The notes beneath the pieces were generated by a model. The model was given only the letters and a program-made list of their open reading frames with translations. It did no database searches and was not told the origin of the DNA. DNA of 64,000 nt from Octopus bimaculoides (Eukaryota): positions 25,706,726 through 25,770,725 of the forward strand of contig NC_068999.1 in the NCBI RefSeq assembly GCF_001194135.2. Direction: 5' to 3'. The position numbers and the translations under genes were made by a program. How positions within the stretch are numbered: the stretch's first letter is position 1; the number at the start of each line of letters is the position of its first letter. This document shows positions 48,101-49,378 of the stretch, in pieces.

Positions 48101-49378
48101 ATGATGAATCTTTAATAGAACATTATTCTTTCTCTCAATTTGGACCTCTCCAAAAGTTTGAATTGTTCTCTTTTGAACTTATTTTTTCCCATATATGTAT
48201 ATATATGTGTATACATATATGTATATATATGTATGTGTGTGTTTGTATATATATCAGATATACTTTTCGTAATGAGATAAAAAAAAAAAACCAAGGCTGT
48301 GTATAATATAGAACATTTATAAATCGAATGTCTTACAGCTGTTTCCAGGATATTTATTATATCTCTTCATCGGAGATGGTGTGAGAGGATGATTAAGCAA
48401 TAGTTAGTTTAGTTAAGATAGGAAACAGAGAGTGAATGTAGGGATAAATCTTATATGTATACTATTCTGCCTAAACAATGGATTTACAAATACAACATCC
48501 CTACATTCACTCTCTGTTTCCTATCTTAACTAAAGTAACTATTGCTTAATCATCCTCTCACACCATCTCCGATGAAGGGATATAATAAATATCCTGGAAA
48601 CAGCTGTAAGACATTCGATTTATAAATGTTCTATATTATACACAGCCTTGGTTTTTTTTTTATCTCATTACGAAAAGTATATCCTATATTCACACGCTCC
48701 ACACCTGCACCCACCTATCATGAAATTTAACTTAATACCATTGTTTGATAGTGAATGTACATTCCTTTTGGCAGATGTTGTTTGTCAGTAAAATTACTTG
48801 CACATCTCAGATGTTTCTTGTCATAGCCAAGTAGTCAGTTACATCAGTCTTAACTCTATCTTAAAACCTATTGCCTTTAACTTTCGTGTATAGTAATGAT
48901 CTATGATCAACTTAAAATCAAGTAGCTAAGCTCTCACCAGAATACCACAGCTACTTTCTTTTACACCTAATATTTAACACTTCATTTTCAACAAACCTCT
49001 CAGAATGAACATCAACTGATGTGTATCTAAGAAAAACAGAATGAACAAGAGATAGTTGATAGCAAAATCTTTTAAACCAATCTCAAACTTACCTTGTCAT
49101 GCAATGTCCAACCAACATACTTCAAGTAGCTATCATCAAGAAACATGTAAGGGTACTTTCGCATCCACACCCCGATCTCTGATGAACATATTGCTCTTAT
49201 TTCTGGCTGGGTGTCCCTGCAAAAATGTCAGCAAATCATCAACCCATGACTTACCTTGTCATGCAATGTCCAACCGACGTACTTTAAGTAGCTATCATCT
49301 AAAAACATATTCGGGTACCTCCGCATCCATACCCCAATTTCTGTTGTACATATTGACCTTATTTCTGGGTGTGTATCT
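6097..49378 (-). CDS. STAG1/2: Cohesin subunit SA/stromalin (STAG1/2 ortholog), multi-exon, 5'-incomplete in window
   Basis: 24 exons with canonical AG/GT boundaries join in consistent phase into 937 codons (using either copy of the duplicated exon). They are collinear with the human STAG1/2 sequence as I recall it: [89 protein letters not shown]. The last two exons are tentative. Confidence 0.97.
7985..8017 (+). mobile_element. Possible Helitron-like 3' terminus
   Basis: tgGGC-aac-GCCgagtatctctgCTAG|T: short hairpin followed by CTAG and T; 5' end not identified. Confidence 0.35.
8473..8499 (-). CDS. STAG1/2: Candidate 27-nt STAG microexon
   Basis: tttttattactcacag|ACCCAACAACTGGAATCCATTGCCTTT|gtaagtt; phase 0/0; TQQLESIAF; no homology support. 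Confidence 0.5.
9981..10131 (-). CDS. STAG1/2: STAG exon (C-terminal tail)
   Basis: 151 nt, atgtag|…|gtaagt; [50 protein letters not shown]; [12 protein letters not shown] resembles human GLMEEDAEPIFED. Confidence 0.85.
11301..11414 (-). CDS. STAG1/2: STAG exon (C-terminal tail)
   Basis: 114 nt, ttccag|…|gtgagt; [37 protein letters not shown]; QMNWL resembles human QMQISWL. Confidence 0.85.
11933..12105 (-). mobile_element. RTE-3'-end-related short element, interrupted by a copy of flanking DNA
   Basis: catcatcgtttaatgtacattttc and ctcccatctgatttggcaagg…ctacagctggatgcccttcctaacgccaaccactcc match the family at 19846, 46235 and 63656. Confidence 0.7.
12188..12425 (-). CDS. STAG1/2: STAG exon (low-complexity C-terminal tail, Ala-rich, NLS-like)
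   Basis: 238 nt, ttgtag|…|gtaagt, phase matches both neighbours; (A)[35 protein letters not shown]…[11 protein letters not shown]…[10 protein letters not shown](S). Confidence 0.9.
13066..13185 (-). mobile_element. RTE-clade reverse transcriptase fragment
   Basis: [24 protein letters not shown] (non-LTR RT DxxKAFD motif). Confidence 0.8.
13490..13668 (-). CDS. STAG1/2: STAG exon
   Basis: 179 nt, ttacag|…|gtaaaa; [59 protein letters not shown]. Confidence 0.94.
14375..14535 (+). mobile_element. RTE-3'-end-related short element
   Basis: …gtccaacccatgccagtatggaatatggacgttaaatgatgatgac tail, same family as the 43.2 kb 3' end. Confidence 0.7.
14743..14874 (-). CDS. STAG1/2: STAG exon
   Basis: 132 nt, ttccag|…|gtaagt; [43 protein letters not shown](V). 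Confidence 0.96.
15058..15134 (-). CDS. STAG1/2: STAG exon
   Basis: 77 nt, tatcag|…|gtaggt; [25 protein letters not shown](K). Confidence 0.96.
15477..15545 (-). CDS. STAG1/2: STAG exon
   Basis: 69 nt, ttacag|…|gtaagt; [23 protein letters not shown]. Confidence 0.94.
15630..15870 (+). mobile_element. 3' end of ORF of an RLE-type non-LTR retrotransposon (HERO-like)
   Basis: …[28 protein letters not shown]…stop resembles the EAAEKASxWLWxKR…W C-terminus I recall for HERO-clade elements. Confidence 0.55.
15909..16080 (+). repeat. 60-bp tandem repeat (about 2.9 units) with E-box-like palindromes, followed by a TATA-like box
   Basis: Units start at 15909, 15969 and 16029 (gacagtgtcaYgtgacaactWgctgg…ctagcagc); TGTCACGTGACA at 16034-16045; atataaaaag at 16081-16090. 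Confidence 0.9.
17101..17224 (+). repeat. (GA)n microsatellite, about 120 bp
   Basis: Direct reading; ends 31 nt from the donor of exon 17256-17357. Confidence 0.98.
17256..17357 (-). CDS. STAG1/2: STAG exon
   Basis: 102 nt, ttttag|…|gtgaga; [34 protein letters not shown]. Confidence 0.96.
18854..18987 (-). CDS. STAG1/2: STAG exon
   Basis: 134 nt, taacag|…|gtaggt; (E)[44 protein letters not shown]. Confidence 0.96.
19457..19845 (+). mobile_element. Mariner 5' fragment (TIR plus N-terminal transposase)
   Basis: gagggggtacccagaag 5' end; [37 protein letters not shown]…[17 protein letters not shown]; truncated by a (CAT)n-tailed insertion. Confidence 0.8.
19846..20049 (-). mobile_element. RTE-3'-end-related element with (CAT)n tail, runs into gap
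   Basis: (cat)n ttaacgtccgttttccatgctggcatgggttgga…ctacagctggatgcccttcc. Confidence 0.85.
21195..21348 (-). CDS. STAG1/2: STAG exon
   Basis: 154 nt, tttcag|…|gttagt; [51 protein letters not shown]. Confidence 0.95.
21834..21926 (-). CDS. STAG1/2: STAG exon
   Basis: 93 nt, ctccag|…|gtaaat; [31 protein letters not shown]. Confidence 0.92.
22150..22495 (-). mobile_element. Composite degraded SINE / RTE-tail fragments
   Basis: ccagatgcccttcctgtcaccaacc and cacttgcccaag…cagtgggact…accacatg…gggaagcaa segments. Confidence 0.6.
23166..23246 (-). CDS. STAG1/2: STAG exon
   Basis: 81 nt, ctgtag|…|gtatgt; [27 protein letters not shown]. Confidence 0.92.
23370..23640 (+). mobile_element. RTE-clade LINE fragment
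   Basis: [10 protein letters not shown]…[14 protein letters not shown]…[23 protein letters not shown], matching the 43.9 kb copy. Confidence 0.9.
24133..24220 (-). CDS. STAG1/2: STAG exon
   Basis: 88 nt, ccacag|…|gtagaa; [29 protein letters not shown]. Confidence 0.94.
24313..24483. repeat. Imperfect foldback element (about 68-bp arms)
   Basis: attattttatgagcttcattagcttacagttgtttctgctatgagatgcag… / …ctgcatcttataacagaaacagctgtaagctactgaagttcataagataat: 45/51 matches in the outer arms. Confidence 0.9.
25537..25607 (-). CDS. STAG1/2: STAG exon
   Basis: 71 nt, tttcag|…|gtaact; [23 protein letters not shown](C). Confidence 0.94.
25671..26340 (+). mobile_element. Three tandem copies of SINE family 1
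   Basis: Same core as at 2636-3180 but in opposite orientation, separated by (TTA)n/(TTG)n. Confidence 0.85.
26660..27240 (-). mobile_element. Hsmar1-like mariner, N-terminal half, disrupted
   Basis: [10 protein letters not shown]…[65 protein letters not shown]…KWVP…[18 protein letters not shown]; ATG at 27143. Confidence 0.9.
27248..27385 (+). mobile_element. SINE family 1, 3' half
   Basis: gaggttgactttgcctttaatcctttcggggtcgataaattaagtaccag…. Confidence 0.8.
27556..27699 (-). CDS. STAG1/2: STAG exon
   Basis: 144 nt, tttcag|…|gtaaga; [48 protein letters not shown]. Confidence 0.95.
29104..29163 (-). CDS. STAG1/2: STAG exon
   Basis: 60 nt, ctgcag|…|gtaagg; [20 protein letters not shown]. 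Confidence 0.94.
31118..31207 (-). CDS. STAG1/2: STAG exon
   Basis: 90 nt, caacag|…|gtaata; [30 protein letters not shown]. Confidence 0.96.
31479..31568 (-). CDS. STAG1/2: STAG exon
   Basis: 90 nt, ttttag|…|gtaaga; [30 protein letters not shown]. Confidence 0.95.
31872..32090 (-). mobile_element. CORE-type SINE family 2, partial
   Basis: ggcttctttcagtttctgtctaccaaatccactcacaaagctttagtcagcccgaggctatagtagaagacacttgccc. Confidence 0.8.
32281..32513. mobile_element. hAT-type MITE (233 bp) with 8-bp TSD
   Basis: TIRs CAGTAGTTCTCAACC / GGTTGATAAACATTG (11/15 match); exact TSD ATGTAAAG at 32273-32280 and 32514-32521. Confidence 0.9.
32722..34516 (+). mobile_element. Degenerate piggyBac-like element (TTAA-flanked) carrying a SINE insertion
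   Basis: TTAA|CCCCTTTTGATAC … GTAACGAAAGGG|TTAA; transposase relic [34 protein letters not shown]…HGLGYDVV…ILFFDRFF at about 33460-33670. The two ends may belong to different elements. Confidence 0.75.
33851..34243 (-). mobile_element. CORE-type tRNA SINE family 2, full length
   Basis: Minus strand: ggagtggctgtgtggtaagtagcttgc…ccgggttcagtcccactgcgtggcaccttgggcaagtgtcttctac…ggtgctccagcatggccgcagtcaaatgactgaaacaagtaaaag. Confidence 0.9.
34550..34653 (-). CDS. STAG1/2: STAG exon
   Basis: 104 nt, gtgtag|…|gtatgg; (S)[34 protein letters not shown]. Confidence 0.95.
35930..36044 (-). CDS. STAG1/2: STAG exon
   Basis: 115 nt, ggttag|…|gtaagt; [38 protein letters not shown]. Confidence 0.96.
36169..36391 (-). 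CDS. STAG1/2: STAG exon
   Basis: 223 nt, ttccag|…|gtaagg; [38 protein letters not shown]…[18 protein letters not shown]. Confidence 0.96.
37530..37643 (+). mobile_element. SINE family 2, 5' part, runs into gap
   Basis: gactgtttggtaagacgttagcttcccaaccacatggttttgggttcagtcccactg…gggcaagtgtctt. Confidence 0.8.
38497..38576 (-). CDS. STAG1/2: STAG exon
   Basis: 80 nt, ttatag|…|gtaaaa; [26 protein letters not shown](R). Confidence 0.96.
38955..39185 (-). mobile_element. tRNA-headed SINE (family 3) with hammerhead-like 3' region
   Basis: A-box-like TAGCATAGTGG (39171-39181) and B-box-like GAGTTTGATTC (39128-39138); tail gacacCTGATGAaggctggagggtatatcagccGAAAtgttatgtt. Confidence 0.7.
39685..39783 (-). 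CDS. STAG1/2: STAG exon
   Basis: 99 nt, ttatag|…|gtaagg; [33 protein letters not shown]. Confidence 0.96.
39825..42800 (+). mobile_element. Penelope-like element (RT plus GIY-YIG), degenerate, antisense to STAG
   Basis: [15 protein letters not shown]…[11 protein letters not shown] (about 40850); [22 protein letters not shown]; [18 protein letters not shown]; [11 protein letters not shown]; [13 protein letters not shown]…LYISETR…EHL (about 42070-42190); many stops and frameshifts. Confidence 0.9.
42885..43290 (+). mobile_element. RTE 3'-UTR-derived element with (GAT/CAT)n tail
   Basis: …ggagcctggtgtagccatctgg…ccaacccatgctagcatggacagcagacgttaaatggtgatgatcatcatc; homologous to 44640-45040. Confidence 0.85.
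43330..45040 (+). mobile_element. 5'-truncated RTE-clade LINE (RT C-terminal half plus 3' UTR), partly in gaps
   Basis: …[34 protein letters not shown]…FRYLGDQV; [14 protein letters not shown]…[17 protein letters not shown]; [13 protein letters not shown]; YADD catalytic motif present, one frameshift near 43990. Confidence 0.95.
45207..46118 (+). mobile_element. Solo LTR (912 bp) inserted in a (TA)n tract
   Basis: Starts TGT, ends ACA; GTCACGTGA at 45370-45378, TATAAATA at 45418-45425, AATAAA at 46026-46031; CpG-rich relative to surroundings; TA repeats on both sides. Confidence 0.7.
46235..46380 (-). mobile_element. RTE-3'-end-related element, truncated
   Basis: (cat)n cgtttcacgtccgctttccatgctagcatgggttggacg…ctacagctggatgcccttc. 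Confidence 0.85.
46498..46615. repeat. Perfect 118-bp palindrome centred on (TA)n
   Basis: ggaaggtacaagtaaaaatatatacatatatacatgcatgc(at)n gcatgcatgtatatatgtatatatttttacttgtaccttcc. Confidence 0.95.
46958..47374 (-). mobile_element. CORE-type SINE family 2, full length
   Basis: Closely similar to 33851-34243. Confidence 0.9.
48257..48683. repeat. Near-perfect inverted repeat, arms 189/187 bp, 51-bp spacer
   Basis: 48257-48445 vs 48497-48683: 2 substitutions and a 2-nt poly-A length difference. Confidence 0.95.
49093..49216 (-). CDS. STAG1/2: STAG SCD exon, copy B (mutually exclusive candidate)
   Basis: 124 nt; acceptor gctgacatttttgcag|G, donor AAG|gtaagt; (R)[41 protein letters not shown]. 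Confidence 0.95.
49255..49378 (-). CDS. STAG1/2: STAG SCD exon, copy A (mutually exclusive candidate)
   Basis: 124 nt; acceptor ctgtactgtttcag|A, donor AAG|gtaagt; (R)[41 protein letters not shown]. Confidence 0.95.

Follow-up and report, generated by a model that had tools for sequence, protein, structure and literature searches.

The 64,000-nucleotide (nt) window analysed here, from Octopus bimaculoides (RefSeq assembly GCF_001194135.2, contig NC_068999.1), carries on its minus strand the gene for cohesin subunit SA/STAG, and within this gene two homologous exons, A and B, stand in tandem. From the exon sequences, ten RNA assemblies and annotated proteins of four cephalopods, we conclude that the pair is very probably spliced in a mutually exclusive manner, with a single octopus SA/STAG gene giving two full-length SA proteins; each mature messenger RNA (mRNA) would carry either A or B, and the two products would be distinguished by six residues in octopus and by five in cuttlefish. 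The pair is real, ancient and regulated, and of an ordinary mechanistic kind. The SA subunit is a docking hub for CTCF, shugoshin, WAPL and other regulators, and vertebrates divide its roles among paralogous genes; here, one cephalopod gene appears to make two SA variants by swapping an exon that builds the hub.

Two intact exon copies in one SA gene

Exons A and B have equal length, the same reading phase, common splice signals and 83% identity, which marks them as homologous neighbouring exons, and a repeat finder returned one direct repeat (136 nt, 84% identity, spacing 162 nt). Their acceptors read tttcag/A (exon A, preceded by ctgtactgtttcag) and ttgcag/G (exon B, preceded by acatttttgcag), both donors read GACAAG/gtaagt, and the peptide of each begins after one carried-over base. 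The minus-strand sequence thus bears out the initial annotation, made from the letters alone, which had described two 124-nt exons of the same phase with AAG/gtaagt donors, valid acceptors and open frames, and it equally confirms that each copy reads in frame into the exon starting at 39783. The two copies differ at 21 of 124 nt, the final 21 nt being identical, and a recount reproduced the codon differences previously listed: 13 synonymous (12 whole codons plus the split first codon) and six non-synonymous (H/Q, S/A, T/S, T/S, R/K and N/Y). RNA editing was ruled out as the source of these differences, which are genomic and include changes other than A-to-G. By the Nei–Gojobori method, synonymous divergence (dS) between the copies is approximately 1.0 and non-synonymous divergence (dN) is 0.074 (dN/dS 0.07); judged from this comparison, purifying selection acts strongly on both copies.

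As would suit an assembly artefact in which two alleles or a collapsed paralogue had been set in tandem, the scaffold behind the window is gapped (nine runs of N), but this explanation deserves next to no credence. All sampled words of a 501-nt stretch around the pair were present in same-species DNA runs from at least three studies, such that independent runs contain the entire stretch of A, intron and B. Single genomic contigs of five other species also cover A, the intron and B, an RNA contig extends from A across the 38-nt intron toward B, and chromosome-level RefSeq annotation derives both forms from one gene.

Each exon is used alone in transcripts

Ten RNA assemblies (eight from O. bimaculoides and one each from two related octopod species) were used for the transcript analyses, and in all ten A and B lay on separate contigs, which measured 163 nt each in most runs. 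On its 5' side, each 163-nt branch carried three aligned letters and 27 letters absent from the window; these 27 letters, common to the A and B branches, are the reverse complement of TATCTATGTACAAATACACCCTTGAAT, read ..FKGVFVHRYR, and show one species-specific change in each of the two other species. On the 3' side, two aligned and seven unaligned letters followed each exon's own donor. The length of 163 nt is explained by the geometry of the assembly graph, because a k=31 bubble gives that length when both arms share both flanks: 30 nt of the upstream exon, 103 nt spanning the differing bases from first to last, and a further 30 nt made up of 21 shared exon letters and nine letters of the next exon.

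Among the junctions expected from the initial annotation, those from the upstream exon to A and to B were observed across the 10 RNA runs, and that from B to 39783 was seen directly, in a 2479-nt RNA contig of run X25 that extends from B into that exon; for A to 39783, we infer the junction from the bubble geometry together with the RefSeq and cuttlefish isoforms. No spliced joint between A and B was present in any of the 10 RNA assemblies (the joints table was empty; assembled contigs drop rare forms). The earlier proposal that one gene makes two SA isoforms by exon switching is therefore supported by the use of each exon alone in transcripts of three octopod species. Quantified by contig depth across the runs, as had also been proposed, both forms were present in all ten, with B the usual major form and A a substantial minor form (3–59%) at a ratio that varied between runs (Table 1).

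Table 1. Contig depth of the exon A and exon B branches in ten RNA assemblies.
Run	Depth of A	Depth of B	Share of A
X25	5.7	196	3%
X33	133	1086	11%
X18	7.6	22.7	25%
X28	12.6	32.5	28%
X30	9.2	20.8	31%
X26	52	91	36%
X31	48.6	74.6	39%
X27	32	49	40%
X32	46.9	62.1	43%
X34	440	311	59%

These values bear on whether exon A might be splicing noise or a decaying duplicate, with B alone of consequence. Run X25 would fit such an account, since A reaches only about 3% there and is found solely with the 38-nt intron retained (a low-depth contig comprising the upstream exon, A and the unspliced intron). However, A accounts for 25–59% of transcripts in the majority of runs and outweighs B in X34, it retains intact splice sites and reading frame, its sequence is the same in five other species despite divergence of the flanking introns, and a cuttlefish A-type isoform departs from it by one substitution, all of which make the noise account very improbable.

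Public protein models agree with the transcripts. The A and B forms correspond, respectively, to XP_052830604.1 (isoform X1) and XP_052830605.1 (isoform X2) in O. bimaculoides, to XP_029647953.1 (isoform X2) and XP_029647952.1 (isoform X1) in O. sinensis and to CAI9736488/90 and CAI9736489/91/92 in O. vulgaris, with a further isoform pair (CAE1269083.1 and CAE1269079.1) in the cuttlefish Acanthosepion pharaonis. Over the 768 amino acids (aa) encoded in the window, the O. bimaculoides isoforms differ only at the six A/B residues, as do the two O. sinensis isoforms, and in all four species the annotated pairs differ by this exon only, in keeping with the two isoforms first proposed. These RefSeq and ENA models are exactly the two products predicted from exons A and B; they differ from the present account in being automatic and in saying nothing of the event itself, of how it works, how old it is or where it falls in the protein. 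The initial annotation knew of no description of the event, and this holds for the literature, in which no account of a cephalopod SA exon pair was found (most subscription journals lie outside the coverage of the search) and in which the pair is also not described in two human surveys of mutually exclusive exons or in a 2026 cephalopod 3D-genome paper. It does not hold for the products, as RefSeq X1 and X2 already encode both forms; the kind of event is well known and its mechanism is not new.

A short intron as the likely basis of exclusivity

Within the 38 nt that separate the donor of A from the acceptor of B, the likely branch points of B are UUGAU (A at 49239) and CUGAC (A at 49228), so that the donor of A lies 16 and 27 nt, respectively, from the candidate branch A residues. 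Steric interference at distances below 50 nt and exon sizes that are no multiple of three are known features of mutually exclusive exons (PMC5740500), and by that published threshold the 38-nt intron falls within the interfering range, the consequence for splicing being predicted. We propose that the branch point of B would lie too near the donor of A for a spliceosome to assemble, preventing the joining of A to B. Retention of the intron would truncate the protein at an in-frame TGA (49230-49228), because A, intron and B together span 286 nt (3 x 95 + 1), so that the frame is kept until that TGA, and skipping of both exons shifts the frame, as 124 is 3 x 41 + 1; nonsense-mediated decay would eliminate intron-retained and double-skip products alike. 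Factors that bind the unusually conserved intronic flanks would probably determine which of A and B is chosen.

In a related octopod contig, TGG stands in place of the TGA at 49230-49228, such that A, intron and B form an open 242-aa frame (P0155), and there, a transcript keeping the intron would encode 54 additional aa rather than a truncated protein. With this read-through open reading frame (ORF) as the query, no further tandem copies were found in other taxa.

Exclusivity could alternatively depend on competing RNA structures with docking and selector sites, rather than on the short intron, as known for insect Dscam and 14-3-3zeta. The intronic flanks are conserved enough to contain such sites, but the fold of 49470-49040 is no more stable than expected (-101.6 kcal/mol against -101.9 for shuffled sequence, z = 0.06), a repeat finder returned no inverted repeat in 48500-50000, and the 38-nt intron is sufficient alone. 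The pair accordingly lacks the hallmarks of the Dscam-type class, and we regard RNA structure as an improbable basis for the exclusivity. Incompatibility between U2 and U12 splice sites was rejected as well, both donors being GTAAGT and both acceptors comprising a pyrimidine tract and AG.

Steric interference by the short intron is thus the mechanism that we favour, and it places the SA pair in known company. As in mutually exclusive exons of the alpha-tropomyosin exons 2/3 type (human surveys in PMC5740500, PMC8373072 and PMC9741552), the exons are adjacent, homologous and equal in length and phase; as in steric-interference pairs, their length is no multiple of three, well under 50 nt separate the donor from the branch point, a default exon is paired with a regulated one, and both copies are ancient and under purifying selection. 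The differences lie in the host gene, STAG/SA being absent from the main text of the two surveys searched, and in the restriction of the SA pair to cephalopods. As such, the pair offers a clean example, from beyond the usual model organisms, of mutual exclusion probably imposed by a short intron.

Age and conservation of the pair

The cuttlefish isoforms CAE1269083.1 and CAE1269079.1 are identical but for five positions (H/Q, S/A, T/S, T/S and N/Y); the cuttlefish B exon matches octopus B at 41 of 41 residues, and R20K is the sole difference between the cuttlefish and octopus A exons. Since the cuttlefish has the pair with the same five A/B differences, the duplication is older than the split between octopuses and the cuttlefish and squid lineage. 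This split dates to the order of 250–300 million years ago. In an oyster (Magallana gigas), a chiton (Liolophura sinensis) and a limpet (Patella caerulea), the corresponding genomic locus has one exon copy each, with the same boundaries (ag/N GAY ... AAR/gt), so that dating by comparison, as the initial annotation had suggested, sets a pair in the cuttlefish against single copies in the other molluscs. Relative to other molluscs (molluscan consensus, among approximately 115 animal SA proteins), A and B share the derived residues R19 and H39, while the ancestral states Q3 and K20 are kept in B and S8 and N23 in A, a residue pattern consistent with a single duplication on the cephalopod stem. 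The initial annotation had argued for an old duplication under purifying selection rather than a misassembly, and the low dN/dS, the cuttlefish pair, the independent DNA runs and the contigs from other species together uphold that view.

Conservation extends into the introns. Compared with organism E, the block 49054-49459 shows five differences in 406 nt, against approximately 58 in 464 nt in its surroundings. For organisms E and I, no change is listed in exon A and two in exon B (49099 and 49192, each a synonymous change at a third codon position), with one in the 38-nt intron (49220), where five other species show no further change, and one in the 81 nt upstream of A (49420); sequence beyond 49460 diverges between species. 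Regulated alternative exons typically show conservation of their intronic flanks and silent sites, and the flank 5' of exon A is, on this comparative evidence, a candidate site for splicing regulators.

Two protein models from the databases contain duplications of their own. In CAE1269081.1 (P0389), a third cuttlefish model, the opening 32 aa of exon A (ending ..DDSYLK) run straight into exon B, adding 32 aa; this fusion is almost certainly a gene-prediction error to which the exon pair gave rise. A predicted 704-aa protein from another organism (P0121) repeats a 201-aa block, so that the whole SCD region occurs twice. It was rejected as an instance of the same event: the block is duplicated within a gene model, has no relation to the cephalopod pair, and reflects another kind of duplication or else an artefact of the assembly or of the gene model.

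Position of the differences and possible functional consequences

Aligned to full-length human SA-2, exon position p corresponds to SA2 residue 298 + p, such that the exon covers SA2 residues 299-339; its human counterparts, STAG2 exon 11 and STAG1 exon 10, carry W334 and W337 (PMC10279526). This region contributes to a conserved essential surface (SA2 Y297, L329, W334, L366, F367 and F371, with RAD21 S334, I337 and L341) that docks the YxF/FGF motifs of CTCF, SGO1, WAPL and CENP-U (PMC10279526, PMC11182772, PMC11331136). L329 and W334 are encoded by the exon and are the same in A and B, and the six differences fall at exon positions 3, 8, 11, 12, 20 and 23 (SA2 301, 306, 309, 310, 318 and 321). 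In an AlphaFold model of a related fragment (mean predicted local distance difference test score, pLDDT, 80), one difference lies directly before the first helix, three share a face of that helix (i, i+3, i+4), another is at its end, and the last is in the turn preceding the helix with the pocket residues. The initial annotation had placed the switch inside the most conserved domain of the protein, which is correct for the exon and not for the docking-pocket residues; these are unchanged, and it is the neighbouring helix and turn that vary. The A/B differences adjoin the docking pocket and do not touch its residues, and their most likely effect would be to fine-tune the surface beside the pocket rather than to change the pocket.

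Several points weigh against the reading of a regulated, mutually exclusive pair with distinct products. The transcript evidence consists of contigs rather than raw reads, such that rare double-inclusion or double-skip forms are lost and abundance is only roughly reflected by depth; the link from A to 39783 relies on graph logic and on the RefSeq and cuttlefish models. Regulation is visible solely as variation between runs, which carry no tissue labels, and the threshold of approximately 50 nt comes from a human survey (PMC5740500) and not from cephalopods. At the protein level, the A/B differences are mostly conservative and fall at the exon positions that vary most among phyla (approximately 115 SA proteins). 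In addition, the first 257 residues of the model are identical between octopus and cuttlefish, and the conservation of the A/B differences may partly reflect generally slow SA evolution in coleoids. The mild substitutions and the generally frozen coleoid SA protein argue for caution over a functional difference.

The pair could thus be real and mutually exclusive, with proteins that are functionally equivalent, the copies being kept through divided tissue or stage expression, or because neither alone gives enough correctly spliced mRNA. The conservative nature of H/Q, S/A, T/S, T/S and R/K (N/Y being the exception), the location of the differences at the most variable positions of animal SA proteins, outside Y297, L329 and W334, and the co-expression of both forms in all 10 runs are compatible with equivalence. 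Against it, octopus and cuttlefish agree in five A/B-specific residues, the copies have diverged from each other with a dN/dS of 0.07, and gene conversion has not homogenised the exons, though their last 21 nt are identical. On balance, we consider equivalence rather unlikely, while giving it appreciable weight; the five isoform-specific residues kept in two lineages, together with variable usage, argue for some functional difference.

What that difference might be is more tentative. Vertebrate STAG1, STAG2 and STAG3 likewise provide more than one SA version per cell with the pocket residues Y297, L329 and W334 unchanged, but these are whole-gene duplicates that differ along their full length, whereas the octopus changes six positions of one exon; within this exon, we take SA1 and SA2 to differ at positions 16, 38 and 41 (from the alignment). 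For coleoids, the exon pair is the only route to SA diversity visible here, and both versions of the docking-surface HEAT repeat have been kept since before the octopus–cuttlefish divergence. It is conceivable, though a speculative proposal to which we would assign a minor probability, that A and B are a splice-level counterpart of STAG1/STAG2 specialisation, with SA-A and SA-B differing in affinity for WAPL, shugoshin or CTCF and each serving tasks of its own (such as cohesion as opposed to tissue-specific chromatin looping, or germline as opposed to somatic roles). Cephalopods have an unusual genome architecture with context-specific chromatin loops (PMC13652810). The pair is a natural, evolution-tested set of substitutions beside the pocket, and as such a handle on the surfaces that tune partner choice.

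Gene model and other features of the window

A 21-exon model (exon B, the exon at 39783 and 19 downstream exons, which were placed using database fragments and full-length relatives; Table 2) encodes 768 aa, identical at 768 of 768 positions to XP_052830605.1, annotated as O. bimaculoides cohesin subunit SA-1 isoform X2, and departing by two differences from the protein of O. sinensis and O. vulgaris. The cluster of identical proteins has the Pfam domains STAG, SCD and HEAT_SCC3-SA (PF08514, PF21581 and PF24571), and the segment matches solved human structures of SA-1 (PDB, E = 1.6e-51) and SA-2 (E = 1.5e-47); these three domains and the close similarity to solved SA1 and SA2 place the gene in the SA/STAG/Scc3 family. 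The upstream exon (..FKGVFVHRYR) was not found in the window by exact and 2-mismatch searches, and tblastn with STAG-domain fragments gave nothing above 49400. This exon lies beyond 64000 or inside the 700-nt gap 58724-59423, and the intron 5' of exon A is consequently longer than 14.6 kilobases (kb), unless the exon sits within the assembly gap.

Table 2. Positions of the exon pair, the remaining SA/STAG exons and the assembly gaps in the window.
Feature	Position	Strand	Basis or remark
Exon A, 124 nt	49255..49378	-	sequence, RNA branches, XP_052830604.1 and XP_029647953.1
Exon B, 124 nt	49093..49216	-	sequence, RNA branches, XP_052830605.1 and XP_029647952.1
Intron between donor of A and acceptor of B, 38 nt	49217..49254	-	
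Conserved intronic flank 5' of exon A, including polypyrimidine tract and acceptor	49379..49459	-	at most one change, five species
Conserved intronic flank 3' of exon B, including donor GTAAGT	49054..49092	-	organism E; approximately 12-17% divergence beyond
Next constitutive exon, common 3' partner of A and B	39685..39783	-	spliced model
SA/STAG exons 1-5 of 19 downstream	38576-38497, 36391-36169, 36044-35930, 34653-34550, 31568-31479	-	
SA/STAG exons 6-10 of 19 downstream	31207-31118, 29163-29104, 27699-27556, 25607-25537, 24220-24133	-	
SA/STAG exons 11-15 of 19 downstream	23246-23166, 21926-21834, 21348-21195, 18987-18854, 17357-17256	-	
SA/STAG exons 16-19 of 19 downstream	15545-15477, 15134-15058, 14874-14743, 13668-13494	-	
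Assembly gaps (N runs), 1-5 of 9	20050-20813, 29195-29204, 33112-33121, 37644-37695, 39347-39356		
Assembly gaps (N runs), 6-9 of 9	44156-44386, 45041-45140, 57454-57534, 58724-59423		

The 9.3-kb intron after exon B (39784-49092) contains a 243-aa ORF on the plus strand (43270-44001; Pfam RVT_1, E = 1.3e-7, with a weak PHD finger) that is a retrotransposon remnant; neighbouring long ORFs on both strands in 40096-44547 had no Pfam match. Part of 39600-48800 resembles sequence mostly from human sequencing runs and could be a repeat or contaminant-like, while 48800-49700, around the exon pair, shows no such resemblance. Long apparent ORFs at 58687-59484 are artefacts of the run of N there. Finally, O. 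bimaculoides isoforms X3 and X4 are without 9 aa (TQQLESIAF) or 16 aa immediately before the last residue; this C-terminal variation marks a second alternative-splicing site of the SA gene, beyond the exon model (below window position 13494), and the SA of Argonauta hians has the form without the C-terminal 9 aa.

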